Source: Octopus sinensis (lineage: Eukaryota). Taken from it: a stretch of DNA of 64,000 nucleotides. This document shows, piece after piece, positions 2,808 through 63,291 of the stretch (positions within the stretch are counted from its first letter, which is position 1; each line of letters opens with the position of its first letter). Where the stretch lies: the NCBI RefSeq assembly GCF_006345805.1, contig NC_043010.1, positions 60,450,001 to 60,514,000 on the forward strand, given 5' to 3'. The position numbers and the translations under genes are program-made. The notes under the pieces were generated by a model that had not been told where the DNA came from, ran no database searches, and worked only from the letters and a program-made list of their open reading frames with translations.

Positions 2808-5207
2808 ATGATAAGAAATATTCTTTCACTATATTTGCTAGACATGCTACTGTTCTCTGTTGTGTCTTTAGACATTACCTACCATATCAATGAAGAAAAC
2901 AGCCCTCATGCCTACATAGGAGATATTGCTGCTGATTCTAATATGTCACATTTTTTTAAACATCAACAACACAATCTTGTTACGTTTACACAATTACAAA
3001 GGAAGGTGTCAAGTGGCTCTCATCTATTTAATGTCACCAACTTAGGGAAACTTTACACAACTCAGACACTGGATGCTGAATCTTTGTGTACAATCAACAA
3101 AGAATGTTTCAAAATTGTTAGGATAGCAGTTCGGAAAAGAAAAACCTATGTAAAGATTTTAAAAGTCAAAGTAATCATAAAAGACATCAATGATCATGGA
3201 CCTGAGTTTCCAGAAAGTGAAATAAATTTGCAATTTGATGAAAATGATCGGGAAGGAACTAAAAAGCCAATTCCAAATGCTATTGATAGAGATATTACCA
3301 TTCAGAATTCTAGGATAACTTATGAACTGAAGGAAAATATAGATGACCCATTTTCATTGTCTCTTTCAAAAGACTATGATGGGACTTTCATACCTGAGAT
3401 AGTTCTACAAGGTAAGCTGGATAGAGAAAGAAAGAAACATTATATGTTAAAGCTGATTGCTAAAGATAATGGTATACCACCAAATGAAAATATTTTACAT
3501 TTTCAGATATCTGTAACTGACTCTAATGATAATAAACCATTATTTTCTCAAAAAGTATATAACATTTCAATAAAGAATAAACACCCCAAATCAAAACCAA
3601 TTTTAGTTTTAGAAGCCACAGATTTAGATTCAGGGACAAATGGAAAGATTGCCTTTAATTATAGTCCCAAAACACCAATTGAAATAAGAAAATATTTTGA
3701 TTTGAAAAAGGCATCTGGAGAATTGTTTGTAAATGAGTACTTTAAAATAGATACCAAAAACTCTTACAAGCTGTTTGTTGAGGCTAAAGATGGAGGGAAA
3801 CCTCCCTTAAGTTCAACAACAGTGATTTTGATTTCTAAAGAAAGCAATCATAATATTGCTCCAAAAATTGATATAGACTTTGTGTTTCCTTTGTCAGAAA
3901 GTTCGACTGCTCTTTTAGAAGACATTAAAGTTAGTAGTTTTATAGCTTATGTCATAATTACTGACAATGATATTGAAGAAAATGGACAGATTGATTGTAA
4001 TTTGGAACATGAAACCTTTGGAATAGTTGAAATGGGTTCACATGAATATAAAATGACCACAAAATGTCCTCTTGACAGAGAAACAAAAGATCGCTATGAT
4101 ATTGTACTTGTTTGCCAGGATATGGGATTTCCACCACTCAAATCAGAAAAACAATTTTCTATTGAAGTACTTGATGTCAATGATGTAGAGCCACATTTTA
4201 CCAAAGAGACATTCCAATTCCTCACCTATGAAAACCAGAAAGTTGACTTCCCTATTGGCTTCATCAATGCTACAGACCCTGATCTTGGAGATGGAGGCCA
4301 ACTTACATATTCTATCATCAATGATAACAACAATGATAACATTCCTTTCCAACTGACAAAATATGGATTTTTTTCTACATCACAATCAATAGATCGAGAA
4401 ATGAAAGACATCTATAAGTTCAAGGTTTTAGTGAAAGATAAGGGAACACCTTCACTCAATGACACTGCCAATATTGTTATCGAGATTCTAGATAAAAATG
4501 ATAATGCTCCATATTTTACGTTTCCTAATAATGACCCTTACAATCTAGATGTCCACTACCATCCAAACAGTAAAAAGGACATCACAATTCTGAAAGCATC
4601 TGACAAAGACACTGGAAACAATGCTTTCCTCACATATGGAATATTAAAATCTAATGATAAAAACATGCTAACGGTAAATTCTTACACTGGGGTATTATCA
4701 TTCTCTCGTATAATTAATATAAATGATGCTGGAACGTATGAGCTACAGTTCATGGTGAAAGACAGTGGTACTCCAGTTCAATCAGCAACAACTGTTATCA
4801 TGCTAACACTGCATGTTAGTAATGATACACTTCCAATGCAAGCTGCAACCCATCTCTTATCTGGCACTGACTTAAACATAATTTGGGTAATAATCATTGT
4901 GGCAGCAGGAGTAATACTATCTGTGGGTATTGTAGTTTGCTTAACAATGTGTGTTTTCAGATGTATTAATCACATTAAAAGTTCACCTTCAACTTCAGAT
5001 AATCATAAAATCCTGACAGGCTCTAAGATGAGGCCAATGCCATATGAAACTAACAACCCTATTGCATTTACAAGAAATACAGAAGACACATATAACAGAA
5101 ATTGTCAGACAATGAGCTCAAAAAGTCATTATTACCCTGAGATGGAAAAGACTATCAATGAAGGCAAATTTTCAGCAACAGCTAGAAAACTTCCACCAAT
5201 TCCACAG
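2808..5207 (+). CDS. Protocadherin A, large coding exon (signal peptide, EC1-EC6, TM, proximal tail)
   Basis: 811-aa ORF with hydrophobic leader, cadherin motifs (DINDHGPEF, LDRE, DSNDNKP, DVNDVEP, DKNDNAP), EC1 C-x5-C (CTINKEC) typical of protocadherins, and TM IIWVIIIVAAGVILSVGIVVCL. Phase-0 donor CAG|GTTGGT at 5207/5208, homologous to the donors in genes C and D. Confidence 0.95.
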
Positions 5208-8135: not shown

Positions 8136-8298
8136 TCTATTGATCAGCCAAGTAAGGAGTCTTCTGATGAGCATGGAGAAACTATATCTACTAAGAGTAT
8201 CAATTATATGAGTAATACATTGCCATGCCAATGGCCATCTGAAAGTACCTGGGATGAAAGATATACAAGAAATTTCAGTGATATTTCTATTACATCAG
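8136..8298 (+). CDS. Protocadherin A, cytoplasmic exon 2
   Basis: Acceptor TTCTTTTAACTTCAG, 163 nt open in phase 0 (SIDQPSKESSDEHG...RNFSDISITS), donor CAG|GTAATT in phase 1. Same 0-to-1 phase pattern as the equivalent exon in C and D. Confidence 0.75.
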
Positions 8299-8906: not shown

Positions 8907-11359
8907 CTAGGAGACAGGTTTATTTAGCCAGAGGGGAAGCAGATAAGAAAAAAATTGCCAATGTTCTGTGCCGTGAGGAGCAAAGACTTGAGGTATTTTG
9001 TATTGCAAGACAGTGTGTGAGAGAGGATCATGATGTTGTAGGAGAGAAATGTGTCTGCATGGATGATGGTTCACTTGCACTAAACGAGGCTGCAAAGAGA
9101 GAGGTTTCGAGACGCCACTATGAGAGGTTGCTCAATAAAGAACATGAAGGGGAGAAAGAGAGTCTGCTGAATGTCAACCCAACAGAGGGACCAGCTATCT
9201 GAGTTTACAGTACCTTGGTAGATAAAACAGTTGAGAGTATGAAGACAGGGAAAGCCCCCGGTCCACCAGGAATCACTGCAGAGATGCTCAAAATATCTGG
9301 CAGTGTTGGCTATAGCCTAGTCACCTGTATAGTTATCAGGTGATATACAAAGGAGCCATACTCAATGACTAGTGTAGCAGTACCATAGTCAACTGCTACA
9401 AAGGTAAAGGTGATGCTTTAGATACAAATAATTACAGAGGTATCAAGTTGTTAGATCAGGTAATGAAGGTCATGGAGAGGGTCATAGCCCAACTAATTAG
9501 AGAGAGAGACAGTTTAGATGAGATACAGTTTGGGTTCATGCCAAGGAAAAGCACCACCGATGCTATATTTCTAGTAAGACAGCTGTAGGAGAAATACCTA
9601 GCCAAAGATAAACCTCTGTACCTGGTTTTCGTTGACATGGAGAAAGCTTCTGACAGGGTCCCCTGATCCCTTATCTGGTGGTCAATGAGGAAACTAGGGA
9701 TAGATGAATGGTTAGTGAGAGCTGTGCAAGCCATCTACAGGGGTGCTGTCAGTAAGGTGAAGAATTCCGGGTAGTCCTCAGCCCCCTCCTATTTATCATA
9801 GTCCTCCTGGTAATAACAGAGGAATTCAAGACAGGATGCCCTTGGGAGCTCCTCTATGCTGACAACCTTGCTCTAATTGCTGAGTCACTATCAGAACTAG
9901 AGAAGTTTCAGGTGTGGAAACAAGGATTAGAATCGAAGGGCCTTAGAGTCAACCTAGCTAATAAGTAGGAAGGCAGACAAACCATAAATCCCTTCAGGTA
10001 GATGGCCCTGCTCGATCTGTAGAAAAGGCATAGGTAGAAACTCTATAAGATGTACCCAGTGTAATCTATGGACACAGAAGAGGTGCAGCAATATCAAAGG
10101 AAGGTTAACTGGCAGATAGTTTTCGTATGTGGCAGATGGTCAGGAGCAATAAACACTGAAAATGTGTAGAGAACAACTTCTGCCACATTCCAGGGAGAAA
10201 AACTAGAAGTAGTTGATAGCTTCTGTTACCTAGGTAACCAAGTCAGTAGTGAGAGAGGGTGCACTGAAAGTGTAGCTGCTAGAATAAGAATAGCCTGGGC
10301 AAAGTTCAGAGAGCTTCTACCTCTGCTGGTGACAAAGGGCCTCTTGCTCAGAGTAAAGGGTAGACTGTATGACGCATGTGTACAAGCAGTGAAACATAAG
10401 CCATGACTGCTGAGGACATGCATAAGCTCGCAAGGAATGAAGCCAGTATGCTCCGATGGATGTGTAATGTCAGTGTACATACTCGACAGAGTGTAAGTAC
10501 CTTGAGAGAAAAGTTGGACCTAAGAAGCATCAGATGTGGTGTGCAAGAGAGATGACTGCGCTTGTATGGTCATATGGTGAGAATGGATGAGGACGGCTGT
10601 GTGAGAAAGTGCTACTCCCTAGCGGTTGAGGGAACCTGTGGAAGAAGTAGACCCAGGAAGACCTGGGATGAGGTGGTGAAGCATGACCTTCCAACATTAG
10701 ACCTTACCGAGGCAATGACTAGTGATTGAGACCTTTGGAAATATGCTGTGGTTGAGAAGACCCAGCAAGTCAAGTGAGACCATAACCTCATGGCTTATGC
10801 CAGGGGTGTAAGCAGCCTATTTTTGTGTACCTTTCCTTCATTGGACACTAAAGTCTGCTTGCAAAGACCTGTTGAGGCAATTGAAATCAAAATTGAAATC
10901 AAATTCGATGACTGGCATCCATGCTAGTGGAGCACTAAGAGCACCATCCAAGTGTGATTGTTGCCAGAGCAGCTGACTGGCTTTCGTGTTGGTGGCACGT
11001 AAAAAGCACCATTCGAGTATGATTGTTACCGGCGTTGCCTTACTGGCACTTGAAAAATCATTCGAGCAAAGTCATTGCCAGTGCTGCTGGATTGGCTCCT
11101 GTGCAGGTGGCACATAAAAAACACCATTTGAGTGTGGCCGTTGCCAGTACTGCCTGACTGGCCCTCATGCCGGTGGCACATAAAAGCACCCACTACACTC
11201 TTGGAGTGGTTGGCATTAGGAAGGGCATCCACCTGTAGAAACTCTGCCAGATCATATTGGAGCCTGATGCAGCCATCTGGTTTGCCAGTCCTCAGTCAAA
11301 TCATCCAACCCATGCTAGCATGGAAAGCAGATGTTAAACGATGATGATGATGATGATGA
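8907..11359 (+). mobile_element. 5'-truncated RTE-like LINE with 3' UTR and (ATG)n tail
   Basis: Decayed RT motifs QFGFMPRKSTTDAIF, PLYLVFVDMEKA.DRVP, LLYAD(N)L, a Cys-rich CSICRKG...CTQC segment, and a 3' end GTTAAACGATGATGATGATG. Many stops and frameshifts. Confidence 0.85.
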
Positions 11360-12479
11360 ATTAGCAGTAGATTTGTCAGTACTTATGTTAGTTTTTGTCT
11401 GTATGGTGCAAATTAAGAAGATTTAAAGATCAAAATTTGAGAAAAACAAGCTGTTCATTTATTTAATCTGTGGAAGATTTAAGTAATAATATGATGTAAT
11501 GTTTTAATTATAGCAAAATGATATTAAATATTAAAAATGACAAGAGTGTTGTGAATAGCAAAACAGAGAAGTGAACCAAAAACTTAATACTTAACTAAAC
11601 TTCTAATTAGCCAAAATACTGCCATTCTGACCTCACCATTCATCCACTGCAATTTAACAAAACAAATATCAATAACATTCTAAGGTAAATTCAATCAACC
11701 ACACTCTTCCTACAAATTTATTATCATGTATCAATGTGATAAATTAATATTTATAACAAAATTTAAAAGTGTCTACTCAATGTTAGCTCGTTGACCTTTC
11801 TATATATCATTAAGAAAGATTTTAATTAAAAAATGTCTAATTAACTATTCCAGTTGTCATGCCAAGCATATATCTGAGTATCCAATATAAGTAAAAACTT
11901 TGAATATGCAATGTAAATACTTTTGGAAGCTTGCTTTCAGTGGTAATTAAGTGGAGGAATGTAAAAGCCTGGTGAGGAGAGTTGTATTTGTCTGTAGATG
12001 AAATTTGTATAGGATATGAGAAGTATCCTCCTCCTCATCATCAATTAATATCCACTTTCCATGGGTTGGATGGTTTGGTAAGGAGATGGCCAGCTGGGGC
12101 CAACTCTTTACAGTGTGCTGGATGGTTTTTATGTACCATTGGCATGGGTGCATGAGTGTATTTTATGTGGCATTGACAGTGTAAAAGACAAGCCTGTATT
12201 TATGGATGACAGCAATTTTGTTTAGCTAGATGTGTCTTCTCAAGTACAACAAATCACCACAACTCCCAGTTCCTTGTCATTTCCTCAGTGAGGCTCAATG
12301 AAAATCTTGACATATTTAGATAATTTAATAAAACAACTGTAATCTAGCAAAAATGTATTATAATAAAATTATTGCACATATCTCAACAAACATTCTTATT
12401 ATTTTCTGAGTTTGGCTTCAGCTTTAATGACTGCTTCAATGCAGGATCAGAATAGCTAAATGACCCTTATTTATTTTGG

Positions 12480-13828: not shown

Positions 13829-14493
13829 AACTCAAAGAATTACTAGCACTGATAACATTACCCATCAAGTGCAATAATTTGACTTTGCTAAATTAATTTT
13901 ACTCAGGGTAATTAACTGGATTCATAAATCTCAGATTTGAATTTAGTAAATCTACACAGTTGATACTGAGGCAGAAAAGAGATTCAAGATGTAAATTTAT
14001 GTAGAATATATTATAATTTTTAATTTTTTTATCCATGTATTTCATTGAAAGGCAGTTTAGGAACATATGGTATCTAAAAGATGTTACTATATTTATGACG
14101 CCATAAGATAAAGATAAACGCAAAAAATAAACCTATCCAGTGTATGATTTTATATTAAAATCTATAGGTTAGATTCTATTTCTAATGTTGCTTGAACTCT
14201 TCGATATATTTGTTGATGCTGGTTTAACATAAATTTTTCCATGGGGTGTTGAATTGGCTGAGTTTCTTTTATATAAAATATGCTTTTTACTTTTCAACAT
14301 GTGTTCTAGAATCTAACTTCATTACTTTGAAGTTGCATTATAACAATTCAACAATCTGAAACCAACATCTGATACCTCTCCTTTGAGGCTCCATGCCAAC
14401 ACAAAAATGCTATTTCTGTCAAATTGTGTTAGTTTTTATGCTTTATCCAACGATTTGAGCACAAGTTTTTTTATTTTATTTTATATTTTACAG

Positions 14494-14585
14494 AGTTTGA
14501 TGATTCTAAACCAGAAGTTCCTCCAAAACCAAATCGTCTACAAAACCAAGATACATATTTAGAGCCAACATATCTAACAAAATAA
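14494..14585 (+). CDS. Protocadherin A, terminal coding exon
   Basis: Acceptor TTATATTTTACAG; phase 1 gives (E)FDDSKPEVPPKPNRLQNQDTYLEPTYLTK*. QDTYLEPT matches QDTYLQPT of genes C and D. Predicted spliced protein is 884 aa. Confidence 0.8.
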
Positions 14586-23085: not shown

Positions 23086-23350
23086 CATCATCATCATCGT
23101 TTAACGTCCATTTTCCATGCTCTGATGTTTAATGAAGTTTAACATTCAACAATAAAATCGTTATCATTTAACATCCATCTTCTATGCTGGCATGTGTTGG
23201 ATGGTTTGACAGGAGCTGGCAAGGTGGAGGGCTGTACCAGGCTCCATTGTCTTCTTTGGATTGTTTCCATAGCTGGATGACCTTCCTAATGCCAACCACT
23301 TCACAGTGTAGTGACTGCTTTTTATGTGGTACCAGTACTGGTGTTTTCTA
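23086..23350 (-). mobile_element. RTE-type 3' tail fragment
   Basis: CATCATCATCGTTTAACGTCC...CCATGCT is the reverse complement of the LINE end at 11300-11359. Similar fragments near 12030, 26076, 40969 and 54112. Confidence 0.7.
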
Positions 23351-24636: not shown

Positions 24637-25202
24637 TTGGGTTGTCCGGAGAGTTTGTGACTATTTTTAAAGGAAAGAAAAAGGTCAATAAATACTTGCC
24701 ATTACATTTTTAATCAACCAAATATGAACCATTTTGTTGCAGAATGCGTCTCCATCTTTCCTTTAACTTGAAAGTACCCTCTTCCCAGAATTGAGGTGGT
24801 TTCATGCCAAAGAATTCATCAAGGTATCTTTTTACATCATCCAAGGAATTGAAATTTTTACCATTAAGACTATTCTGCAGAGACCTGAATATGTGGAAAT
24901 CTGAGGGAGCAATATCTGGTAAATATGGAGGGTGGGGTAACACATCCCAGCCGAGCTGCAGCAATTTTTATCTAGTTCCCAAAGCATCAAGTGCCAAAAA
25001 TGAACTTTCTTATCTTCCATTTTAAAGGGTTACTGAATTAACACAGGTTATAGGAACATAAATCTTCTTCCATGAGAAGATAGCTTATACTGTGCTCTAA
25101 ATGGAAGGGTAGTCAAATCCTATTTTATGGACTCAACCATGTTCTAAAATAAGTCGAAAGGTAAGGTACTATAAATCGGCACAAACTTTCCGGACAACCC
25201 AA
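24637..25202 (-). mobile_element. Internally deleted mariner element
   Basis: TIRs TTGGGTTGTCCGGA(G/A)AGTTTGTG at both ends, TA flanks at 24635-24636 and 25203-25204, and minus-strand ORF 24710-24964 with HPPYLPDIAPSDFHIFRSLQN (mariner YSPDLAPSD motif) running to the C-terminus. Confidence 0.92.
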
Positions 25203-26075
25203 TAAAATAAAGGTGAGTAATAATATCCATATGTGTGTATGTTTTTATAAATTTGAGTGTGTATGTAGATATTTATGTATATATACATGCACACATACAC
25301 ATATAAACATACATATATACAAACACAAAATGCTGCATTGCAGGGCTATCTCTGTGTGGGTAACAAGCAGTATTATCTGCAAAAAGTAACTCATGAACAG
25401 GTTGTTTCAGTGTTTTGGTGTGAGCTTACATGTGCCTCCGGTTGAAGAGATATTGGGTGTAGATGCCATCTACATCATTATGGTCTTCTGAAGCATCTTG
25501 CTGAAGATGGGGAAAAAGGTTGGCATGAGAACACAGTCTTCCTTCATACTGTTGCCACAAGGGAAGGGCTAGGAGAGGTTTTTGCTACACCTGACCTGAT
25601 GGGGAATACCATAGAAGTGGTACAAGAACGCTAAAGAAATCCCTCAATACCATGTGTCTGTTCTTGATGAAGACTATGGAGCATGGCATCTAACTGACCT
25701 CCTTTGAAAACGTATGCAGGACCATCCTTGCAAACAAAAGAAAAAGGAATGAAAAGACAAGGATACGACAACCAACTCTGATCAGCCTACCTTCCTATAC
25801 AACCATTTCCATTCGTCTTGTGCATCAGCAAGCCTGCAGTAGACATGAACATCACTGTAAACCTTTGCTAGCTAAGACAAACATATATGCATAAATACAT
25901 GTACACTCACAATATATATATATATGTATATATATAAGCAATTAAGTGGATAAATTAATTGCTTCTATACCTGTTCAACCTGTGTAACAATCTCCTGTAA
26001 AGACATTGGAGTCTAAGTTTGAATATTACTGTCTTCTATGCAGAGAATATCTGGATCTCATCTGTGAACTCACAA

Positions 26076-26687
26076 TCATCATTTAACGTCTGCTTTCCAT
26101 GCTAGCATGGGTTGGACGATTTTGATTGAGGATTGACGAACCAGATGGCTGCACCAGGCTCCAGTCTTGATCTGGCAGAGTTTCTACAGCTGGATGCCCT
26201 TCCTAACGCCAACCACTCCGAGAGTATAGTGAGTGCTTTTACATGCCACCAGCACAAGGGCCAGTCAGCGGTACTGGCAATGGCTATGCTCAAGTGGTGT
26301 TTTTTACATGCCACCTTGCACAGGAGTCAGTCCAGTGGCACTGGCAACGACCTCGCTCTAATGTTTTGTTCACATGCCACCGGCACAAGTGCCAGTAGGG
26401 CGATGCAGATAACGGTCATGCTCTAATTGCTGAGTCACTATCAGAATTAGAGGAGAATTTTCAGGTGTGGAAACAAGGATTAGAATCAAAGGGCTTTAGA
26501 GTCAACCTAGCTAAAACCAAAGTCTTAATAAGTAGGAAGGCAGTCAAACCATAAATCCCTTCAGGTAGATGGCCCTGCTCAATCTGTAGAAAAGGCGTAG
26601 GTAGAAACTCTATAAGATGTACCCAGCGTAAGCTATGGACACATAAGAGGTGCAGCAATATCAAAAGGAATAACAAGAAAGATGAAC
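26076..26687. mobile_element. RTE-like LINE fragment: 3' tail on minus strand joined to an ORF piece on plus strand
   Basis: 26076-26405 matches the reverse complement of the LINE 3' end; 26411-26687 matches roughly 9870-10100 in forward orientation. Confidence 0.75.
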
Positions 26688-35639: not shown

Positions 35640-36630
35640 TTAATATTTTGAAAACGATGTGGAATTTTAAGAACTCAAGAGTCATCTCCCTTGCAACATT
35701 TGTCGTCTGCGTTCCGTCAGCAGACGCTCTTCGCCGTCGATGAAAGATCGTAAAATTCGTCTCCTTTGATTTCTAATTTTATATTGTTGCAAAATTAATT
35801 TAGGAAAATGTTTTCAATATGGATATTTACATGTAAAGGCAAAGAGTGAGTAATGATATTAATTTCTGATATATCTTACGAGTTTTGACTGATATTTTGT
35901 GAATTTCTAACAATGCTTGATAATCCTTTTTTATAAAAAAAAAAAAAGGGAGGATTCTTTATTAATTGCTAAAAAGAAAACTTGTTAATATTTCATAGTT
36001 TGATAATCAAAAAAAGTTTTATTCATAAATCGAAAAAAAAAAAAGTCTTTATAAAGTGCTAAAAAGAAATTCAGAGAAGCTCCATAAGTTCTTTGTTTCC
36101 TTTCTTCTTTTTTTACTAACATTTCATTAACGGTGTTTAAATAATGTTGCTTAAAAAATTCGAAGTACTTCCATTGCCAACTTTGGAGCAGTTTTATTGT
36201 CGTCTGCTCTAATGGAAATATTAAATTTTTATATTGTTTTGGTATCGTTTCCTTTAATGGAAATATCAAATTGCTACATTGTTTTATTGTTGTCTGTTTT
36301 AATGGAAATATTAAATGGCCATTTTGTTTTAGTATCGTCTGCTTTAATGGAAATATCGAATTGTTTTAATACCATTTCCTTTAATGGAAATATTAAATTT
36401 TTATATTGTTTTAATATCGTTTCCTTTAATGGAAATATTAAATTGTTTTAATATCGTCTGCTTTCATGGAAATTTTAAATTGCAACATTGTTTTAGTATC
36501 GTCTGCTTTCATGGAAATATTAAATTGCCGTATGATTTAGTATCGTCTGCTTTAATGAAAATAATAAATTGCTACATTGTTTTAGTATCGTCTACATTAA
36601 TGGAAATATTAAATTGTTTTAATATCGTCT
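35637..36630 (-). repeat. Inverted duplicate of ~32344-33334
   Basis: Mirror ORFs in the track are nearly identical (32705+ vs 35985-, 32523- vs 36197+, 32315- vs 36384+); only a few substitutions and poly-A/T length differences by eye. Confidence 0.95.
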
Positions 36631-38196
36631 GCTTTCATGGAAATATTAAATTGCTACATTGTTTTAGTATCGTCTGCTTTAATGGAAATATTAAATTTCC
36701 ATATTGTTTTAGTATCGTTTGCTTTAATGAAAATATTATATTGCTACATTGTTTTAGTATCGTCTGCTTTAATGGAAATATTAAATTTCCATATTCTGTT
36801 ACTATCGTCTGCTTTAATGAAAATATTAAATTTCCATATTGTTTTAGTATCGTTTGCTTTAATGAAAATATTATATTGCTACATTGTTTTAGTATCGTCT
36901 GCTTTAATGGAAATATTAAATTTCCATATTGTTTTAGTATCGTCTGCTTTAATGAAAATATTAAATTGCAACATTGTTTTAATATCGTCTGCTTTAATGG
37001 AAATATTACATTTTTATATTGTTTCCATATTGTGTTACTATCGTCTGCTTTAATGAAAATAATAAATTTCCATATTGTTTTAATATCGTCTGCTTTAATG
37101 AAAATATTATATTGCTACATTGTTTTAGTATCGTCTGCTTTAATGGAAATATTAAATTTCCATATTGTTTTACTATCGTCTGCTTTAATGGAAATATTAA
37201 ATTGCCATATTGTTTTAGTATCGTTTGCTTTAATGAAAATATTATATTGCTACATTGTTTTAGTATCGTCTGCTTTAATGGAAATATTAAATTTCCATAT
37301 TGTTTTACTATCGTCTGCTTTAATGGAAATATTAAATTGCCATATTGTTTTAGTATCGTTTGCTTTAATAAAAATATTATATTGCTACATTGTTTTAGTA
37401 TCGTCTGCTTTAATGGAAATATTAAATTTCCATATTGTTTTACTATCGTCTGCTTTAATGAAAATATTAAATTTCCATATTGTTTTAGTATCGTTTGCTT
37501 TAATGAAAATATTATATTGCTACATTGTTTTAGTATCGTCTGCTTTAATGGAAATATTAAATTTCCATATTGTTTTACTATCGTCTGCTTTAATGGAAAT
37601 ATTAAATTGCCATATTGTTTTAATATCATCTGCTTTAATGAAAATATTATATTGCTACATTGTTTTAGTATCGTTTGCTTTAATGGAAATATTAAATTTC
37701 CATATTGTTTTACTATCGTCTGCTTTAATGTAAATATTAAATTGCCATATTGTTTTAATATCATCTGCTTTAATGAAAATATTATATTGCTACATTGTTT
37801 TAGTATCGTCTGCTTTAATAAAAATATTAAATTGCTACATTAGTTCACTATCGTCTGCTTTAATGAAAATATTAAATTGCCATATTGTTTTAATATCATC
37901 TGCTTTAATGGAAATATTAAATCGCTACATTGTTTTAGTATCATCTGCTTTAATGAAAATATTATATTGCTATATTGTTTTACTATCGTCTGCTTTAATG
38001 AAAATATTAAATTGCCATATTGTTTTAATATCATCTGCTTTAATGAAAATATTAAATTTCCATATCGTTTTAATATCGTCTGCTTTCATGGAAATATTAA
38101 ATTGCTACATTGTTTTAGTATCGTCTGCTTTAATGAAAATATTAAATTGCCATATCGTTTTAATATTGTCTGCTTTAATAGAAATATTAAATTTTC
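36191..38196 (+). repeat. 45-bp minisatellite, long array with 135-bp higher-order repeat
   Basis: About 2 kb of 45-bp units; translation shows 15-aa periodicity cycling through three variants. Confidence 0.95.
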
Positions 38197-39949: not shown

Positions 39950-42440
39950 GACTGTACTGCACTGGCAATTACATTGGAACTTTATGCAGAAAATTTTAAG
40001 CAAAAGATAATAAAAGATTCTGTTCCAAAGAAGGGTATTTTAAATATTAATGTGTACATGTGTCAAATGTTAATAAAAATCAACTATAGTTTTCTAAACT
40101 ATTAACATCTCGTAATAAAAAATATACAGGGTTTAGATATAACAAAATGGACAAAGAGTTCATATTTTAACTATAATTTATCCTTCAGTTTATTTCTAGC
40201 TTGTAGATAGAAATTTTAAAATAAATCATTTAGATTTGCTAGAGAATTTTTTGTACCTTCTTTATTAATGTTACAGTTCTTCAGATTATAGTGTCTGTCA
40301 CAATTCACTGATCATTATTCTGTTTACTTTTTTAGCTTGTGGTGCAATAATTAATAATGATGTTGGACATAATGGGGATGTTACATTCTATTATTAGAAG
40401 ACACTTTGACAAAGAAACATCTGTTGTATATCATGACCTGGAATCATCTCTGTTAAAGACTAAGAAACAGTTCTCTGTCAAAGTAACTGATGTCAATGAT
40501 GTAGAACCACATTTTACCAAAGAGACATTCCAATTCCTCACCTATGAAAACCAGAAAGTTGATTTCCCTATTGGCTTCATCAATGCTACAGACCCTGATC
40601 TTGGAGATGGAGGCCAACTTACATATTCTATCATCAAGGAAAATAATAATGATAACATTCCTTTCCAACTGACAAAATATGGATTCATTTCTACATCACA
40701 ATCAATAGATCGAGAAATGAAAGACATCTATAAGTTCAAGGTTTTAGTGAAAGATAATGGAACACCTTCTCTCAATGACACTGCCAATATTGTTATTGAG
40801 ATTCTAGATAAAAATGATAATGCTCCGTATTTTACGTTTCCTAATAATGACCCTTACAATCTAGATGTCCACTACCATCCACACAGTAAGAAGGACATCA
40901 CAATTCTGAAAGCATCTGACAAAGACACTGGAAACAATGCTTTCCTCACATATGGAATACTGAGATCCATCATCATCATCATTTCATGTCGGTTTTCCAT
41001 GCTGGCATGGGTTGCACAGTTTGACAGGAGCTATCTGTTTTGGCTGGATTTCTACAGCTGGATGTCCTACTTAGTACCAACCACTTTACAGAGTGTGCTG
41101 GGTGCTGAACTTACACGCTGATGTGTTATATTTCTCAGACAATTTACCAAAATGTTTCAGAAACATATGAGCTGACCTTAGCAAGTGATGTAATAGCACT
41201 GCTAACACAATAGAACATGGTATTGACTTAAAAAAACATTTACTCTACTTTGTAATATATTGTGGTTGCATAACAAAATACCATGTTCTTAAAGTCTTTA
41301 ATATTAGCTGGAGTTTATAGTGGTACTCCAGTTCAATCAGCAACAACTGCTATCATACTAACACTGTTTGTTAGTAATGTTACATCTTCAATGTTGACTG
41401 CTGTGCCATTCCAGTCTGGTCACGACCTGAATATGACTTGGATAATTATCATTGTAGCAGCAGCTGTAATAGTATCTGTGGCTATTGTAGTGTCCATAAC
41501 ACTGTGTGTTTTCAGATGTATTAATCACACAAATAACGCACCTACAACAGCAGAGAATCCCAACTTTCTCTCTCAGACTGAGATGAGACAATTGCAAGAA
41601 ATGCAGAAGAGATATTTAACTGAAATCTTCAGACAATAGAGTTTAAAAGTCAGTTTTTTCTGGAGATGGAACAGACACCAGATGAGAGGAAATTCTGAAC
41701 AACACAGAGGAGACTTCTCACCTGTTCCTCAGGTAAATATCATTTTATGTCTCTGATATCCTTTTGATTTTAAATGCAAAAGTATTTTAGTGATTATTCA
41801 CACATGTTCAAATATTTATATAAATTATCAATTTTAGAAACTCATGTGTATGAGCAGTTTTATTCCTTTGCTTAAAATTTATTGTTTATCTGTGACTTTC
41901 TGAATTAATTATTCATTTTTGTTTAGTGATACTTAAACAGTTTCAATGCCTATTATAGAAATACAACACTTTTTATATAATGACTGTTTTATTAGGTAAG
42001 ATCTAGATTTGTATCAATATAATTTTTTATCTTTTCTATAATCAACTGAGATATGTTTCTATCCATAGTCGAGAAGGTCACATCAGTTCCAACCTGTCTA
42101 ACTACAACAGTGACACCTTAACATCCCAAAAGGACAGAGAAGCTAGCAAGAGTAATGGCAAGACTAAACCATATGATGAGATACCTGCAGAACCAGGTAA
42201 CTTTTATCGAAACATAACATATAAATGTAATTGCCTTTATTACTGTAGGACAATATATAATGTTATGCTTAGTGTAATATAAGATCAATGTTTCTATCTT
42301 TATATATTGGAGTTGTTATATTGAAATGTAATTTGTGTTTGTATATTTGATATTTTGCAGAATATACCAATGACAATCCAGTGGCAGCCACAATACTAAA
42401 GGGACAGCAAATACAAGATACCTTTCTACAGCCAACATAG
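39950..42440 (+). pseudogene. Protocadherin pseudogene (psi-Pcdh-B)
   Basis: Decayed EC2-EC4 traces (IKDSVPKKGILNINV, NVNKNQL*FSK, NNDVGHNGDV then a frameshift to HFDKE). Intact EC5 block 40471-40968, RTE-tail insertion at 40969, 131-bp insertion at 41175, 10-nt deletion near 41320, deletion near 41595, exon-2 acceptor AG changed to TG near 42047. Terminal exon 42361-42440 intact apart from Y to F. Confidence 0.88.
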
Positions 42441-47156: not shown

Positions 47157-49559
47157 ATGAATGGAAATATCATTTACCTGGTGTGTTTGCTACAATTACG
47201 ACAGTCTCTTGTACTGTCCATAGATATTACATACCATGTCAAGGAAGAAGGCAGTCCTCACACCTATATAGGAGACATTGCTGTTGACTCCAACTTATCA
47301 TACCCTCTCACACATCAACAACACACTCTCATTACATTTACACAACTACAAAGGACAGTTGAAAGTGGTTCTCACTTATTTAATGTCACCAACTCAGGAA
47401 AACTATACACTACTCAAACACTGGATGCTGAGTCTCTGTGTACATACAACAAGGAATGTTCCAGAATTGTTAAAGTAGCAGTAAGGGAAAATAAAAGATT
47501 TCTGAAGATCCTGAAGGTGAAAATAATAATAGAAGACATCAATGATCATTCTCCAGAATTTTCTATTGATAAAATCACTGTTAAATATACTGAAGATAGT
47601 TTTAAAGGAACCAGAAGGATAATTCCATTTGCCATAGATAGGGATATAACCATCTTGAATTCCCAAATTTCATATAAAATAATGGCTAGTCAAAGAGATC
47701 CATTTTCTTTGTACATGAAAAAACAAAATGATGGTGCCTTCATACCTCAACTTATTCTTGAAGAAACATTAGACAGAGAAGTCAAAGACTCATATATGTT
47801 GACCCTGGAAGCTAAAGATGGAGGGAACCCTCCCAAAACAGCTACACTCAAGGTACACATATCTGTGACAGACGTCAATGATAACACACCTGTATTTTCA
47901 CAGAAAGTCTACAATGTCTCTATAAGCAATTCACATCAAAGACATTTACCAATTCTTACTTTAAAAGCAACAGATAGAGATTCTGGACACAATGGAAAGA
48001 TTTCTTACCATTTCAACCATAAAACTCCCATTCTGTTCCAGAAATATTTTTTATTAAAGAGAACTAATGGTGAGATATATTTAAAAGATAATTTTAGTTT
48101 TGGTGGAAAACATACATACAAATTATACATTGAAGCACAAGATGATGGGAGTCCCTCCCTAAGTTCTGTAACAATGGTACAGATTCACGTAATTAGTAAC
48201 CAAAATTCTGCTCCCATGATAAATATAGATTTTGTATCTCCTTTATCAGAGAGTTCCACAGCAGTTTCAGAAGACAGTGAAGTAGATAGTTTTATAGCTT
48301 ATGTTATGGTCACCGACAATGATAGTGGACCTAATGGTGAGGTTAGCTGTGATTTAAAACATGATAAATTTAAACTTGCCAAAATGGATTCTAAAGAATA
48401 TAAAATAATTGTTAAGGGCCACCTTGACAGAGAAATAAGGGACCATTATAAAGTATCTGTTGTGTGTCGTGATATGGGGTCACCTCAACTAGAAAGTAAA
48501 AAATATTTCTCTGTCAAAGTAACTGATGTCAATGATGTAGAACCACATTTTACCAAAGAGACATTCCAATTCCTCACCTATGAAAACCAGAAAGTTGACT
48601 TCCCTATTGGCTTCATCAATGCTACAGACCCTGATCTTGGAGATGGAGGCCAACTTACATATTCTATCATCAGTGATAACAACAATGATAACATTCCTTT
48701 CCAACTGACAAAATATGGATTCATTTCTACATCACATCCAATAGATCGAGAAATGAAAGACATCTATAAGTTCAAGGTTTCAGTGAAAGATAATGGAACA
48801 CCTTCTCTGAATGACACTGCCAATATTGTTATTGAGATTCTAGATAAAAATGATAATGCTCCGTATTTTACGTTTCCTAATAATGACCCTTACAATCTAG
48901 ATGTCCACTACCATCCACACAGTAAGAAGGACATCACAATTCTGAGAGCATCTGACAAAGACACTGGAAACAATGCTTTCCTCACATATGGAATACTGAG
49001 ATCCAATGATAAAAACCTGTTTACAGTGAACTCACACACTGGTGTGTTATCTTTCTCTCGCACAGTTTACCAAAATGATGCAGGAACATATGAGCTGCAG
49101 TTTATAGTGAAAGACGGTGGTACTCCAGTTCAATCAGCAACAACTGCTATCATACTAACACTGTTTGTTAGTAATGATACATCTCCAATGTTGACTGCTG
49201 TGCCATTCCAGTCTGGTCACGACCTGAATATGACTTGGGTAATTATCATTGTAGCAGCAGCTGTAATACTATCTGTGGCTATTGTAGTGTCCATAACACT
49301 GTGTGTTTTCAGATGTATTAATCACACAAATAACTCACCCACAACAGCAGAGAATCCCAACTTTCTCTCTCAGACTGAGATGAGACAATTACTGTATCAG
49401 ACCAACAATCCTGTTGCAATAACGAGAAATGCAGAAGAGATATTTAACCGAAATCTTCAGACAATAAAATCTAAAAGTCAGTTTTTTCTGGAGATGGAAC
49501 AGACACCAGATGAATGGAAATTCTCAACAACACAAAGGAGACTTCCACCTGTGCCTCAG
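47157..49559 (+). CDS. Protocadherin C, large coding exon
   Basis: 813-aa ORF with signal peptide, six EC repeats, C-x5-C in EC1 and TM. Acceptor CTAG|AAATAT at 47120/47121; phase-0 donor CAG|GTAAAT at 49559/49560. Confidence 0.95.
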
Positions 49560-49935
49560 GTAAATATTATTTTAAACAATTCTATGGCATATTTTTGAAA
49601 CATTCATCAAAATATATTTGAAATCTCTTATTTTATATACATGTTATGTTCTTTATGCCTTCTCCATAAAACATAATGGCTCTTTCATATTTTTACAATT
49701 TACAGAATTCATAAATCTAAAATTTCCATATATTTCATTAAACTAGTATCTCTGTTTTGTTTATTGTCTACTCCAAGTTATTTTCATTAACTAAGACTGT
49801 CTTCAATTATACTGTTTCTGCTCATTTTAAAAGCATTCCTCTCTTGTGTCTTACCAGAAACATTCTAGAATACAAATATATATGTTTCTTCTTTTTAACA
49901 TTATGCTTCACTCTGCTTTTTTTTCTAATCACCAG

Positions 49936-50080
49936 AGATGTGATTCAATCCATAGTCAAGGACGTCGTACCAGTTCCATCATGTCTTACAACAGTGACAC
50001 CTTAACATCCCAAAAGGACAGAGAAGCTAGCAAGAGTAATGGCAAGACTAAACCATATGATGAGATACCTGCAGAACCAG
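49936..50080 (+). CDS. Protocadherin C, cytoplasmic exon 2
   Basis: Acceptor TTTTCTAATCACCAG, 145 nt open (RCDSIHSQGRRTSS...KPYDEIPAEP), donor CAG|GTAACT in phase 1. Confidence 0.85.
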
Positions 50081-50244
50081 GTAACTTTTATCAAAACATA
50101 ACATATAAATGTAATTGCCTTTATTACTGTAGGACAATATATAATGTTATGCTTAGTGTAATACAAGATCAATGTTTCTATCTTTATATATTGGAGTTGT
50201 TATATTGAAATGTAATTTGTGTTTGTATATTTGATATTTTGCAG

Positions 50245-50324
50245 AATATACCAATGACAATCCAGTTGCAGCCACAATACTAAAGGGACAACAAATACAA
50301 GATACCTATCTACAGCCAACATAG
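50245..50324 (+). CDS. Protocadherin C, terminal coding exon
   Basis: Acceptor ATATTTTGCAG; (E)YTNDNPVAATILKGQQIQDTYLQPT*. Predicted spliced protein is 875 aa. Confidence 0.85.
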
Positions 50325-51229
50325 TAGATGTTCCATGACTATTGTTAAATGATTCTCTCACACACCAAATCTTATACAATACTTTATATTCATATAAAAA
50401 TATCAACTCTATGTTTCTTTCACACATCACACATAAAGGGCCTTGCAGGGCATCTATTATGACCCTTGATTTACATCTCTGATACATGAAATACTACAAA
50501 TACCCTTCTCTATATTATCATTGATGACAGTATATTGGGCTCATTGTATGTTATATTTAATTTGCTAAGCTCCTGTTTTAGTGTAATTCTAATTTCTATA
50601 TTTACATCATCCATTTGTAGCATAAAACAAAATAAAAGTTTTGCTATTATATCATTTAACTAACGATCTTAATCTGGAGGTTCTGCAGAATGTTGACATA
50701 TCTTGTAGTATCCACACCATCTGAGAGGAGAGTAACAATAAATTTAGCATAATTTGAAGTAAAGTGAAATTTAAATGAAATATTATCAGATCTAGTGTTG
50801 AATTTCGATTTAGTAAATCTTAAGAATACTCCCCAAATTAAATACATTCCTACACTAAACACTTTTAGTTTGTCCATTAAAATGTAGCTATATGAATATT
50901 TCATATAAATAATAAAATACAATTTTTATGCAGCATTTTGCTTAATTTACATTTACTGTTGTCACCTAATAGCTGTTGTTTAGATTTCTTTTTGCCACGT
51001 TTGTAGCAACGATGTCTATTTCTTTAACTAACATTGAATTTTTTGTTGTTACAAGGATCTTTTTATTGCTAGGATATACTATAATCTGTTTAATATTAAA
51101 AAATAAGTAATAACAGAACTAAATAGGATACTCCTCGATTAATCACACTATCTATAAAATATATGAATGATAATTGCACATAATTCATCAAACAGCCTCT
51201 GTTTAACATCAATTCTCTTATTTGATGTG

Positions 51230-57699: not shown

Positions 57700-60004
57700 T
57701 GTATCAGATTGCCAGAAGGAAAGCTAGGAGATAGGTTTACTTAGCCAGAGGGAAAACAGATAAAAAATTCTGCATCATGAAGACCAAAGACTTGAAGTGT
57801 TTAGTGTTGCAAGACTGTTTTGAGAGAGAATCATGATGTCATAGGAGAGACTTGGAGATGCCACTATGAAAGGTTGCTAAATGAAGAGAATGAATGGGAA
57901 AAAGAGTCTATCAATTGTCAACCAAACAGAGGGACCAGCTATCCAAATTGACAGTACCTTGGTAGATAAAGCAATTAAGGGTATGAAGATAGGGAATGCC
58001 CCCAGCCCATCAGGAATCACCACAGAGATGCTTAAAATATCTGGCAGTGTTGGCTATAGTCTAGTCAGTCGTATAGTTAGTCAGGTGATACATGAAGGAG
58101 TCATACACAATGGCTGGTGTAGCAGCACCATAGTCAACTGCTACAAAGGTAAATGCGATGCATTGGATACAAATAATTAGAGGTATCAAGTCGTTGGTTC
58201 AGGTAATGAAAGTTACAGAAAGGGACATAGGGTGAGAGTTAGTTTAGATGAAATGCAGTTTGGGTTTGTGCCAGGGAAAAGTACCACTTATGCTATATTT
58301 CTGGTAAGATAGCTGCAGGGGAAATACCTAGCCAAAGATAAACCTCTGTACTTGGCTTTTGTTGACATGGAGAAAGCCTTTGACAGTGTCCCCCGATCCC
58401 TTATCTGGTGGTCAGTGCAAAAACTAGAGATGGATGAGTGGTTAGTGAGAGCTGTACAAGCCATGTACAGGGGTGCTGACAATAAGGTGAGGGTTGGCAA
58501 CAAGTATATTGAAGAATTCCATGTAGGAGTAGGGGTCCACCAAAAATCAATCCTCAGCCCTCTCTTATTTATCATAGCCCTCCAGGCAATAACAGAGAAA
58601 TTCAATACAGGCTGCCTCTGGGAGTTTCTCTGTGTTGATGACCTTGCTCTAATAGCTGAGTCACTATCAGAACTAGAGAAGTTTCATGTGTGGAAGTAAG
58701 GTCTAGAATCGAAGGGCCTTAGAGTCAATCTAGCAAAAACCAAAGTCTTAATAAGTAGGAAGGCAGACAAATCACAAATCCCTCCAGGTAGATGGCCCTG
58801 CTTGATTTATAGAAAAGGCATAGGTAGAAACTCCATAAGATGTACCTGGTGTAAGCTATGGACACATAAGAGGGGCAGCAATATCAAAAGAAGGCTAACT
58901 GAGAAGATAGTTTTTGTGTGGCAAATGCTCAGGGGCAACAAACACTGAAGATGTTCAGAAAACAGCTTCTGTCACTTGCTAGGGGGAAAAACTAGAAGTA
59001 GTTGATAGCTTCCATTATCTAGGTGGTCAAGTCAGTTGCAGGGCTGGATGCTCTGAGAGTGTAGCTGCGACAATAAGAATAATCTGGGCAAAGTTCAGAG
59101 AACTCCTACCTCTGCTGGTAACAAAGGGCCTCTCTTGCTCAGAGTAAAGGGTAGACTCTATGGTGCATGTGTGTGAACAGCCATGCTACACAGCAGTCAA
59201 ACATGGGCTATGACTGCTGAGGACATGCATAAGCTTGCAAGAAATTAACTTAGTATGCTCTGCTGGATGTGTAACGTCAGTGTGTATACACGACAGAGTG
59301 TATCGCCCTGAGAGAAAAATTGGACATAAGAAACATCAAATGTGGTGTGCAAGAGAGACGAATGTGCTGGTATGGTCATGTGCTGCATATGGATGAAGAC
59401 AGCTGTGTGAAAAAGTGTCACATCCTAGCAGTAGAGAAAACCTGTGGAAGTGGTAAACCCAGGAAGACGTGGGATGAGGTGGTGAAGTACAACCTTTGAA
59501 CATTGGAACTCAAGGAGGCAATGATGAGTGACCGAGACCTTTGGAGATATGCTGTGCTTGAGAAGACCTGGCAAGCCAAGTGAGACCATAACGTTGCCTA
59601 TGCCAGTGCAGCACAATCGGCCCATTTAAGAATACCCTTCAATTACTGGGCAATAAATGGTGCTTTCGAAGACCTGTTGAGTCAAGTGAAGTCATTGTCG
59701 TGCCCGATGCCAGTACCACCTGAGTGGCACTCGTGCTGGTGGTACGTAAAGAGCACCATTCGAGCGTGTTCGATGCCAGTGCTGCCTAACTGGTTCTGTG
59801 CTGGTGGTACATAAAAAGCACCATTCAAGCATGGTCGTTGTCAGACTGGCCCTCGTGCCGGTAGCACATAAAAAGCACGCACTACACTCTTGGAGTAGTT
59901 AGCATTAGGAAGGGCATCCAGCTGTAGAAACTTTTGCCAGATCAAACTGTCCAACCCATGCCAGCATGGAAAGCGGACGTTAAACGACGTTGAGCAGGAT
60001 GATG
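57700..60004 (+). mobile_element. 5'-truncated RTE-like LINE in the 5' intron of Pcdh-D
   Basis: Same family as 8907-11359: AFVDMEKAFDSVP, GVHQKSILSPLLFII, LCVDDLAL; 3' UTR repeats and GGACGTTAAACGA end; multiple stops. Confidence 0.85.
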
Positions 60005-60289
60005 TATAAAATTTTTGAAAGAACGCTTCAGATGAGTATTGTTTACAACGTCTAGGGGAGATAACTCTAATGTAAATCCGGACTATTTCTTCACACTAAC
60101 AGGAACACATAAAAACTTACTTTTAATGACTTTCTTTCACAATTTTCAAATATATTTCTATTGTATAGTACTCCAAGGTTTATATTTGATGAACTTTCAT
60201 GTCAAATTTTTTCTTTAAGCTGGTATTAAATAATTTCTATTATATTTGTAGAAATATTCAATAATAATGAAGAATGAAGAGTTGCAATC

Positions 60290-62686
60290 ATGAATGAAAA
60301 CGTTTTTTACTTGGTGTGTTTGCTATATATAAAACAGTCTGTTGTAATGTCTGTAGACATCACCTACCACGTCAAGGAAGAAGACAGACCTCACACCTAT
60401 ATAGGAGACATTGCTGTTGACTCCAACTTATCACACCCTCTCAAACATGAGCAACGCGCTCTCATTACACTTACACAACTACAAAGGACAGTCGAGAGTG
60501 GTTCTCACTTATTTAATGTCACCAACTCAGGAAAACTATACACTACTCAAACACTGGATGCTGAGTCTCTGTGTACATACAACAAGGAATGTTCCAGAAT
60601 AGTTAAAGTAGCAGTGAGGAAAGGAAAAACTTTCATGAAGATTTTGAAGGTGAAAATAATAATAGAAGACATCAATGACTATTCTCCAGAATTTACGGAT
60701 GATGAAATAGGTATCAAGTTTGCAGAAGATAGTCTGAAAGGAAATCAGAAAAAAATTCCATATGCTATAGACAGAGATATTACCATCATGAATTCCCAAA
60801 TTTCATATAACATAAAATATCATAAAAGAGAACCATTTTCTTTGTATATGGCAAAAGATAATGATGGTGTTTTTACACCTGAACTGACTTTAGAAGACAA
60901 ATTAGACAGGGAAGTAAAAGATTTGTATATATTGACCTTAGAGGCTAAAGATGGTGGGAACCCTCCCAGAACAGGTACACTCAAGGTACGCATATCTGTG
61001 ACAGATGTTAATGATAACACACCTGTATTTTCACAGAAACTCTATAATATCTCTATAAATAATTCACATCAAAGACATTTACCAATTCTTACTTTAAAAG
61101 CCACAGATCAAGATTCTGGAGACAATGGAAAGATTTCTTACCATTTCAACCATAAAACATCTCAAAATATCCAGAAATATTTTGTATTGGATAAGAAAAC
61201 TGGAGATTTATTTTTACATGATAATTTTTACTTTAGTAAGATGCAGTCTTTATTTATAGAAGCAAGAGATGGTGGGAATCCACCTCTAACGTCGGTAGCC
61301 AGAATTCACATTTATGTAATTAATAACCAAAACAATGTTCCGTTGATAAATATAGATTTTGTGTCTCCTTTAACAGAGAGTTCCACTGCAGTTTCAGAAG
61401 ACAGTGAAGTAGATAGTTTTATAGCTTATGTTATGGTCACTGACAATGATAGTGGACCTAATGGTGAGGTTATCTGTGATTTAAAACATGATAAATTTAA
61501 ACTTGCCAAAATAGATTCTAAAGAATATAAGATAATTATTAAGGGCCATCTTGACAGAGAAATAAGGGACCACTATAAAGTATCTATTGTGTGTCATGAC
61601 ATGGGGTCACCTCAACTAGAAAGTAAAAAATATTTCTCTGTCAAAGTAACTGATGTCAATGATGTAGAACCACATTTTACCAAAGAGACATTCCAATTCC
61701 TCACCTATGAAAACCAGAAAGTTGACTTCCCTATTGGCTTCATCAATGCTACAGACCCTGATCTTGGAGATGGAGGCCAACTTACATATTCTATCATCAA
61801 TGATAACAACAATGATAACATTCCTTTCCAACTGACAAAATATGGATTTATTTCTACATCACAACCAATAGATCGAGAAATGAAAGACATCTATAAGTTC
61901 AAGGTTTTAGTGAAAGATAATGGAACACCTTCTCTCAATGACACTGCCAATATTGTTATTGAGATTCTAGATAAAAATGATAATGCTCCGTATTTTACGT
62001 TTCCTAATAATGACCCATACAATCTCGATGTCCACTACCATCCACACAGTAAGAAGGACATCACAATTCTGAGAGCATCTGACAAAGACACTGGAAACAA
62101 TGCTTTCCTCACATATGGAATACTGAGATCCAATGATAAAAACCTGTTTACAGTGAACTCACACACTGGTGTGTTATCTTTCTCTCGCACAGTTTACCAA
62201 AATGATGCAGGAACATATGAGCTGCAGTTTATAGTGAAAGACGGTGGTACTCCAGTTCAATCAGCAACAACTGCTATAATACTAACACTGTTTGTTAGTA
62301 ATGATACATCTCCAATGTTGACTGCTGTGCCATTCCAGTCTGGTCACGACCTGAATATGACTTGGGTAATTATCATTGTAGCAGCAGCTGTAATACTATC
62401 TGTGGCTATTGTAGTGTCCATAACACTGTGTGTTTTCAGATGTATTAATCACACAAATAACTCACCCACAACAGCAGAGAATCCCAACTTTCTCTCTCAG
62501 ACTGAGATGAGACAATTACTGTATCAGACCAACAATCCTGTTGCAATAACGAGAAATGCAGAAGAGATATTTAACCGAAATCTTCAGACAATAAAATCTA
62601 AAAGTCAGTTTTTTCTGGAGATGGAACAGACACCAGATGAATGGAAATTCTCAACAACACAAAGGAGACTTCCACCTGTGCCTCAG
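60290..62686 (+). CDS. Protocadherin D, large coding exon
   Basis: 809-aa ORF with the same architecture as C. Acceptor TTTGTAG|AAATAT at 60251/60252; phase-0 donor at 62686/62687. Confidence 0.95.
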
Positions 62687-63146: not shown

Positions 63147-63291
63147 AGATGTGATTCAATCCATAGTCAAGGACGTCGTACCAGTTCCATCATGTCTTAC
63201 AACAGTGACACCTTAACATCCCAAAAGGACAGAGAAGCTAGCAAGAGTAATGGCAAGACTAAACCATATGATGAGATACCTGCAGAACCAG
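63147..63291 (+). CDS. Protocadherin D, cytoplasmic exon 2
   Basis: Appears identical to 49936-50080, including splice sites. Confidence 0.85.

Follow-up and report, generated by a model that had tools for sequence, protein, structure and literature searches.

Clustered protocadherins of vertebrates provide neurons with individual identities. Regional gene conversion among the variable exons of these genes was reportedly described by Noonan et al. (2004, Genome Res 14:354). In fugu, zebrafish and human the conversion ends at a discrete boundary in EC4 or EC5, two of the extracellular cadherin (EC) domains, and EC2-EC3 are spared (PMC1852091). In the vertebrate proteins EC1-EC4 make a specific trans contact, EC2-EC3 are diversified, and EC5-EC6 of one molecule with EC6 of another form promiscuous, asymmetric cis dimers (PMC7811963). 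For cephalopods, the sections considered here of Albertin et al. 2022 (PMC9068888) and Styfhals et al. 2019 (PMC6339937) propose recent duplication and/or conversion as a possible source of the similarity of clustered protocadherins. Those remarks are made at the level of whole genes and trees, in contrast to the tract boundaries, synonymous divergence (dS) profile and domain resolution given below, and EC5, EC6 and the word 'concerted' are absent from Styfhals et al. (PMC6339937). In the literature searched we found no tract boundaries, dS profiles or domain-resolved trees for cephalopod protocadherins. Here we describe a 64-kb window of an Octopus sinensis chromosome (the whole stretch of DNA analysed) that holds four protocadherin loci, A to D, all on the + strand; A, C and D are intact and B is a pseudogene. 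A short internal segment of gene A, otherwise a divergent paralog, is nearly identical to the corresponding segments of B, C and D.

A sequence-only reading of the window had proposed that this segment, called an EC5 cassette, is homogenised across all four loci. We interpret the 472-nucleotide identity as a tract of interlocus (non-allelic) gene conversion, and as one instance of a long-running homogenisation of EC5, EC6 and the transmembrane (TM) segment in this protocadherin subfamily; we put the probability of this interpretation at roughly 0.9. The segments concerned are as follows.

2808 to 5207, + strand: exon 1 of gene A, the divergent paralog (open reading frame to 5243; splice donor GT at 5208)
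4172 to 4643, + strand: putatively converted tract in gene A (A residues 456-612)
40488 to 40959, + strand: cassette copy in pseudogene B (free of indels, within an open reading frame of 254 amino acids at 40357-41121)
48524 to 48995, + strand: cassette copy in gene C
61651 to 62122, + strand: cassette copy in gene D

Across most of exon 1, gene A shares 55-75% identity with C and D. When the three genes are aligned by codon and compared in 30-codon windows, nucleotide identity of A to C or D ranges from 0.53 to 0.87 upstream of codon 436 and from 0.64 to 0.91 downstream of codon 616, compared to 0.93-1.00 between codons about 456 and 612. Within 4172-4643, A differs from D at 12 of 472 sites (4190, 4371, 4386, 4442, 4454, 4481, 4511, 4538, 4547, 4566, 4574 and 4594), and the longest identical run between the two covers 180 nucleotides (4191-4370). 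The remaining pairs are similarly close over the 472 nucleotides, with 15 mismatches for A-C, 14 for A-B, 11 for B-C and 10 for B-D. The tract begins and ends sharply: of the 100 nucleotides before 4172 about 40% mismatch, and mismatches restart at 4644. Thus the sequence-only reading, which had counted by hand about 12 mismatches to D in about 470 nucleotides and an identical run of roughly 175, was accurate on these figures, as it was on the coordinates of the partner copies, on the sharpness of both edges, on the near-identity at all four loci and on the strong divergence of A from C and D over most of its length. Its label was slightly too narrow. All of EC5 does lie inside the tract, but so do the linkers DVNDVEP (between EC4 and EC5) and DKNDNAPYF as well as the opening 43-47 residues of EC6, and in other paralog pairs the shared block mostly runs on through EC6 and the TM segment, in C-D also into the cytoplasmic exons.

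We estimated dS between A and D region by region using the Nei-Gojobori method. It is 1.05 in EC1, 1.49 in EC2, 1.69 in EC3 and 1.09 in EC4, falls to 0.08 in the tract, and rises again to 0.63 over the remainder of EC6 and to 0.79 over the TM segment plus cytoplasmic part. The ratio of nonsynonymous to synonymous divergence (dN/dS) is about 0.2-0.3 inside the tract and outside it alike. In 40-codon sliding windows the proportion of synonymous differences (pS) is 0.43-0.82 over EC1-EC4, 0.00-0.19 at residues 461-620 and 0.27-0.60 thereafter. Where A and D encode the same amino acid, their codons agree in 144 cases and differ in 7 within the tract, compared to 229 and 145 outside it (Fisher p = 9e-18). 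Up to 83 such codons in succession are identical, where 10,000 permutations gave a maximum of 41 (p <= 1e-4). Synonymous divergence between these paralogs is therefore far below that of the flanks on both sides, as gene conversion would leave it. The sequence-only reading had held that the identity includes synonymous sites and stems from gene conversion, and had named an EC5 dS similar to that of the flanking domains as the result that would speak against it; the profile bears the claim out. GC content at third codon positions is also higher in the cassette (0.34) than in EC1-EC4 (0.23-0.285), and raised third-position GC has been taken as a mark of conversion in fugu protocadherins (PMC1852091).

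The near-identity could in principle reflect purifying selection on the protein, or on DNA or RNA (an exonic regulatory element, a splicing signal or codon usage), with no exchange of sequence. EC5 is indeed the best-conserved ectodomain between subfamilies (63-71% identity, compared to 43-53% for EC2-EC3), and dN/dS of the cassette between genera is low, at about 0.15-0.25. An internal control is available, however, in a conserved stretch of EC1 (residues 61-100, window positions 2990-3110), where the proportion of nonsynonymous differences between A and D is 0.06 and pS is 0.51. Strong protein constraint alone thus gives no synonymous identity in this gene pair. For the same reason we rejected this EC1 patch of A as a second conversion tract, since its pS points to selection at the protein level only. 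In the same stretch pS between C and D is 0.07. Protein P0037, from another subfamily, shares 54% identity with A overall; its EC1 matches that of D at 89%, compared to 44% in EC2-EC3, and this likeness in EC1 hints at a second shared module.

The comparison between genera weighs further on the constraint explanation. We used regions from O. vulgaris (GCA_951406725.2; L001 with A, L004 with B and C, L007 with three genes of a 'subgroup 2'), from O. bimaculoides (GCA_001194135.2; L002, 120 kb) and from Argonauta hians (L003, L005 and L006, nine genes altogether), and compared 40 subfamily proteins domain by domain, with neighbour-joining trees of 37-40 proteins. Protein identity of the cassette averages 0.96-0.97 within a genus (minima 0.91 and 0.94) and 0.90 between genera. 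For EC2 and EC3 the means within a genus (0.55-0.60) are close to the mean between genera (0.56), and orthologous pairs reach 0.77-0.83. In keeping with this, the cassette tree and the tree of the remaining EC6 plus TM segment show reciprocal monophyly by genus, with one genus change each, compared to two for EC4, three for EC1 and five for EC2 plus EC3, where the genera are interleaved and proteins cluster by orthology. The five changes in the EC2-EC3 tree indicate that several paralog lineages predate the genus split.

At the nucleotide level, cassettes differ at 2-16 positions within Octopus and at 7-11 within Argonauta hians, compared to 32-39 between the genera; 16 differences are fixed between Octopus and Argonauta, 12 of them at third codon positions. 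Cassette dS is 0.04-0.10 between paralogs of the same genome, whose EC2-EC3 dS ranges from 0.3 to above 2, and 0.22-0.28 in all between-genus pairs. Silent sites of the cassette therefore change over time, and yet they are alike among paralogs older than the genera, which argues for concerted evolution by gene conversion. Since a between-genus dS of 0.22-0.28 is normal, constraint at the nucleotide level is ruled out. Constraint cannot yield genus-specific monophyly of paralogs older than the genera either, nor a cassette that has acquired 12 fixed third-position differences and is uniform across the paralogs of one genus, and we regard this explanation as highly improbable.

These per-domain trees uphold the domain-bounded concerted evolution that the sequence-only reading proposed, with the cassette clustering by genus and EC2-EC3 by orthology. 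Two of its wordings need amending. The distal domains do diversify in EC2-EC3, but EC1 has a part whose protein sequence is strongly conserved. A 'universal' EC5 does not fit the data: the cassette is confined to one subfamily, the next protocadherin subfamilies matching A and D at 63-71% over the segment, and Octopus itself has two cassette haplotypes, 18-25 nucleotides apart.

The 5' limit of homogenisation falls within about six codons (A residues 450-455), in the EC4/EC5 linker, in two independent comparisons: A with C and D in Octopus, and subgroup 2 with subgroup 1 genes in Argonauta. Directly upstream of this limit the subgroup-specific residues (PPLKTKKQ or PQLESKKY) are kept across genera, so that the 5' boundary must predate the split of Octopus and Argonauta. 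The 3' limit is not constant: it lies at residue 612/613 in A, at about residue 720, just past the TM segment, between the Argonauta subgroups, and at the end of exon 1 plus about 30 nucleotides in C-D. In most other paralog pairs the homogenised block extends from the EC4/EC5 junction (from mid-EC4 in C-D) through EC6 and the TM segment.

These boundaries bear on a second alternative, namely that the segments are simply young, arising by recent duplication or unequal crossing-over, with chimeras formed by single crossovers between misaligned members of the array. In a head-to-tail array unequal crossing-over is expected, and the diverged 5' half and near-identical 3' half of C and D are what one crossover would leave. 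However, the tract in A is internal, with divergent DNA on both sides; two exchange points are needed, and this argues for conversion. Moreover, C and D are 99-100% identical from mid-EC4 to the end of exon 1 and 97-100% identical over a block of exon 2, intron 2 and exon 3 (C 49900-50390), but the intron 1 between these blocks (C 49590-49899, D 62720-63100) is only 74-82% identical, with indels. Homogenisation thus appears as a patchwork of tracts that skip diverged DNA, and the C-D pattern fits patchy conversion rather than a simple recent duplication. Finally, the paralog lineages predate the genus split and their cassettes coalesce after it in both genera. On account of the internal patch in A and the diverged intron 1 in C-D we rejected simple recent duplication or one crossover, and we consider this family of explanations very unlikely overall.

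A third alternative is an artefact of assembly, in which reads from paralogs were collapsed or short-read polishing wrote the majority cassette into A. The cassette is a near-identical multi-copy repeat, as such an error would require, and in the short-read-based O. bimaculoides assembly N gaps start inside the cassettes of three paralogs (L002 at about 39631, 68136 and 109838), an expected consequence of a near-identical segment in many copies. Against this, gene A is a mosaic with unchanged boundaries in O. vulgaris and O. bimaculoides as well, so that three species' assemblies agree, and both O. sinensis and O. vulgaris carry four variants of the cassette that are specific to A (4190 G, 4371 T, 4566 A and 4574 A). 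Argonauta hians shows a like pattern on a cassette sequence of its own, and the pattern is thus seen in three further assemblies (O. vulgaris, O. bimaculoides and A. hians). The recurrence of the mosaic and of A-specific variants in independent assemblies speaks strongly against an assembly or polishing artefact of a single genome, the possibility that the sequence-only reading had wanted checked; we rejected this explanation and give it next to no probability. In the O. bimaculoides annotation a model named 'protocadherin Fat 4, partial' (5049 amino acids) fuses many genes of the array.

The conversion into A can be placed in time. Its tract dS to C and D, 0.08, is similar to dS between the A orthologs of O. 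sinensis and O. bimaculoides (0.03-0.10) and about a third of that seen between genera. Taken with the boundaries in common, these values date the main event after the split from Argonauta and before the split of O. sinensis and O. bimaculoides. Some data suggest later exchange into A beyond this main event. Between O. sinensis and O. vulgaris, gene A has changed at 6 of the 472 cassette sites, compared to 3 of 1964 outside the cassette (p = 0.0025), and orthologs do not cluster within the cassette. In a four-gamete test 22 of 91 pairs of informative sites fail (14 informative sites), to which recurrent mutation could contribute. Octopus cassettes fall into two haplotypes that differ mostly in the central third: type 1 in A, B, C and D, and type 2 in subgroup 2, represented in O. 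vulgaris by the copies at L007:2196-2667, 11365-11836 and 24848-25319, whose genes belong to the array of A and lie about 110-130 kb away from it. B was considered as the donor for A, given an insertion in B that starts just past the end of the tract in A and only 6 differences between the O. vulgaris copies of A and B, and was set aside: the O. sinensis copies differ at 14 positions, and D is equally close.

Pseudogene B offers a further view of the process. It is truncated at its 5' end and disrupted; what is left is a degenerate remnant of EC4, followed by the cassette and by a 3' part that is damaged. Its orthologs in O. vulgaris (L004:3100-4700) and O. bimaculoides (L002:29800-31300) share the truncation, the deletions in the EC4 remnant and an insertion, and the same lesions in three Octopus species show that B is an old pseudogene. 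Divergence of B between species is 2.5-3.0% in the cassette, compared to 6.3-7.2% in the flanks (p = 0.009 and 0.0002). The open frame and the low divergence of this cassette would fit repeated overwriting from functional neighbours. B is itself a mosaic, subgroup-2-like in its upstream stretch and C/D-like from the cassette onwards, and its insertion (40970-41105) starts 26 nucleotides downstream of the alignment point at which the tract in A ends. The insertion resembles a short dispersed repeat that also occurs between the genes of the window, at 59874-59993 (inverted), 11059-11254, 23263-23333 and 26162-26394. The B ortholog of O. vulgaris (L004:3262-5267) is annotated as a gene with a product of 226 amino acids, and in the B cassette of O. 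bimaculoides two adjacent bases match a codon change of type 2, so that FTFP, as in type 1, reads FIFP.

Several observations weigh against the interpretation as conversion, or against parts of it. In the 3' part of B, too, about 96% of aligned sites agree with C and D, so that the cassette of B is not much closer to C and D than its surroundings are. As the main event in A is old, 'ongoing' exchange into A rests on small counts (the 6 and 3 differences given above), and the four-gamete failures could stem in part from recurrent mutation. The distances from A to B, C and D, 6-15 nucleotides, single out no clear nearest copy, and neither donor nor direction is fixed by them. The evidence is drawn from assemblies, and in any single one allelic variation, copy-number errors and polishing effects may alter individual bases. 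Lastly, the account of the boundary given next, by a homology threshold together with selection, is one that we infer.

On the conversion reading, a type-1 cassette like that of B, C and D would have been copied into the old, divergent gene A, where it would have taken the place of the original EC5 and of the start of EC6. More widely, the block from the EC4/EC5 junction through EC6 to the TM segment is homogenised repeatedly among the paralogs of one genome, and EC1-EC4, above all EC2-EC3, escape together with intron 1. Conversion is expected to require near-identical flanking DNA. Purifying selection on EC5-EC6-TM would hold the block similar enough for further conversion, the diversified EC1-EC4 domains and the neutral intron 1 would have drifted past the homology threshold, and conversions that overwrite recognition domains would probably be selected against. 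The boundary would thus perpetuate itself at one place. The direction and the donor of the event in A, like the purpose of a common membrane-proximal module, are matters that we only infer.

The other features of the four loci are listed here.

8136 to 8297, + strand: gene A exon 2, cytoplasmic tail (100% tblastn match to the residues of protein P0001 after PPIPQ)
14490 to 14585 (5' end approximate), + strand: gene A exon 3 (stop codon 14583-14585; the 27 C-terminal residues of P0001 match exactly at 14502-14582)
about 40330 to 41747, + strand: pseudogene B
40970 to 41105, + strand: repeat-like insertion in B, which breaks the alignment of B and D
47157 to 49559, + strand: gene C exon 1 (open reading frame to 49598; O. 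vulgaris ortholog at L004:10001-12442)
49936 to 50321, + strand: exons 2 and 3 of gene C, intron 2 included (exons 49936-50079 and 50244-50321, by tblastn), the second block homogenised with D
60290 to 62686, + strand: gene D exon 1 (open reading frame to 62719; matches XP_036365213.1)
63147 to 63532, + strand: gene D exons 2 and 3 (63147-63290 and 63455-63532, by tblastn)

Exon 1 of A codes for a signal peptide, EC1-EC6, the TM segment and the proximal cytoplasmic part, and the product of the gene is 100% identical to XP_036365163.1, annotated in Octopus sinensis as 'protocadherin beta-15-like'. The Pfam Cadherin family matches A at 1.4e-65 and D at 6.3e-69, with five scoring stretches plus an N-terminal Cadherin_2 domain, and cadherin linkers of the DxNDxxPxF type occur in A at residues 127, 239, 348, 457 and 563. 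After CELSR1, the best matches among PDB sequences are Pcdh gammaB4 EC1-6, Pcdh10 and Pcdh19. A and D are protocadherins, each with six EC domains, one TM segment and a cytoplasmic tail, encoded mostly by one large exon. A, B, C and D each have copies of their own of two small 3' exons, degenerate in B. The loci are therefore tandem, complete three-exon genes and not variable exons with shared constant exons; the cluster layout of vertebrates, in which variable first exons are joined by splicing to constant ones in common, is absent at A-D. Separate 3' exons for each cephalopod protocadherin gene are also reported in the sections of PMC9068888 considered.

Outside the genes, a minisatellite occupies 36191-38193 (45-bp units, about 45 copies, 84% match). 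It yields overlapping long open reading frames on both strands at 36384-37843, with no Pfam hit, and the frame at 36384-37733, likewise with no Pfam hit, was rejected as a gene and attributed to the minisatellite. A segment of about 1.2 kb lying upstream of D (58790-60007) has 76-90% similarity to DNA between the genes downstream of A (10000-11361 and 26162-26667); these could be remnants of a duplicated array unit or a repeat family.

What the homogenised module does can be approached through the vertebrate cis interface, where mutagenesis of gammaB7 identified Tyr532 and Val560 as critical residues (PMC7082078). We located the equivalent positions by a phmmer alignment to mouse Pcdh gammaB4 (6E6B), that is, by sequence alignment only, and both fall within the tract of A. 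Tyr532 corresponds to Phe572 of A, a conservative change, and Val560 to Lys596 in A, to Lys in B and to Arg in C and D; in this alignment the two vertebrate interface residues are not conserved in octopus A-D. In delta-protocadherins the interface residues are likewise non-conserved and cis interaction of the ectodomains is absent (PMC7082078). That a common EC5 might let any octopus isoforms pair in cis, as the sequence-only reading supposed, would accordingly be conjecture by analogy. A broader proposal is that octopod protocadherins have converged on two modules, a diversifying EC1-EC4 for recognition and an EC5-EC6-TM shared through conversion, with the EC4/EC5 boundary marking a functional border. 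The shared module would then serve the cis assembly of mixed isoforms or their delivery to the surface, by way of an interface possibly different from that of vertebrates. We hold this proposal to be possible but rather unlikely. A boundary older than the Octopus-Argonauta split argues that the division between recognition and membrane-proximal parts is a general solution and not a vertebrate peculiarity, and the octopod pattern makes a concrete, testable prediction about the assembly of octopus protocadherins. In practical terms, we advise that phylogenies and orthology calls for cephalopod protocadherins be based on EC1-EC4 only, and that breaks of short-read assemblies within the cassette be expected.

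The parallel with vertebrate clustered protocadherins, which the sequence-only reading had drawn, is apt, since matching domain-bounded conversion is described there (PMC1852091). In both systems, large exons in tandem code for EC1-EC6, the TM segment and the proximal cytoplasmic part. Among paralogs the 5' part is 60-80% and the 3' part nearly 100% identical, synonymous sites included, with raised GC at third codon positions. The boundary is discrete, at EC4/EC5 in the octopus, and EC2-EC3 are spared and carry the diversity. The homogenised block of octopods corresponds to EC5-EC6, the vertebrate cis-dimer module, and the spared block to the EC1-EC4 trans unit. In other respects the systems differ. 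The octopod expansion is an independent, lineage-specific one within cephalopods, each octopus gene has its own 3' exons, and the tract in A is an internal patch of 472 nucleotides, not a whole 3' end. The octopus equivalent of Val560 is Lys or Arg, and cis dimers of the octopus proteins would be conjectural. On the other hand, the octopod process can be traced across two genera and includes a pseudogene copy. The process is thus known from vertebrates, and what is new is a cleanly bounded, convergent case in the octopod lineage.

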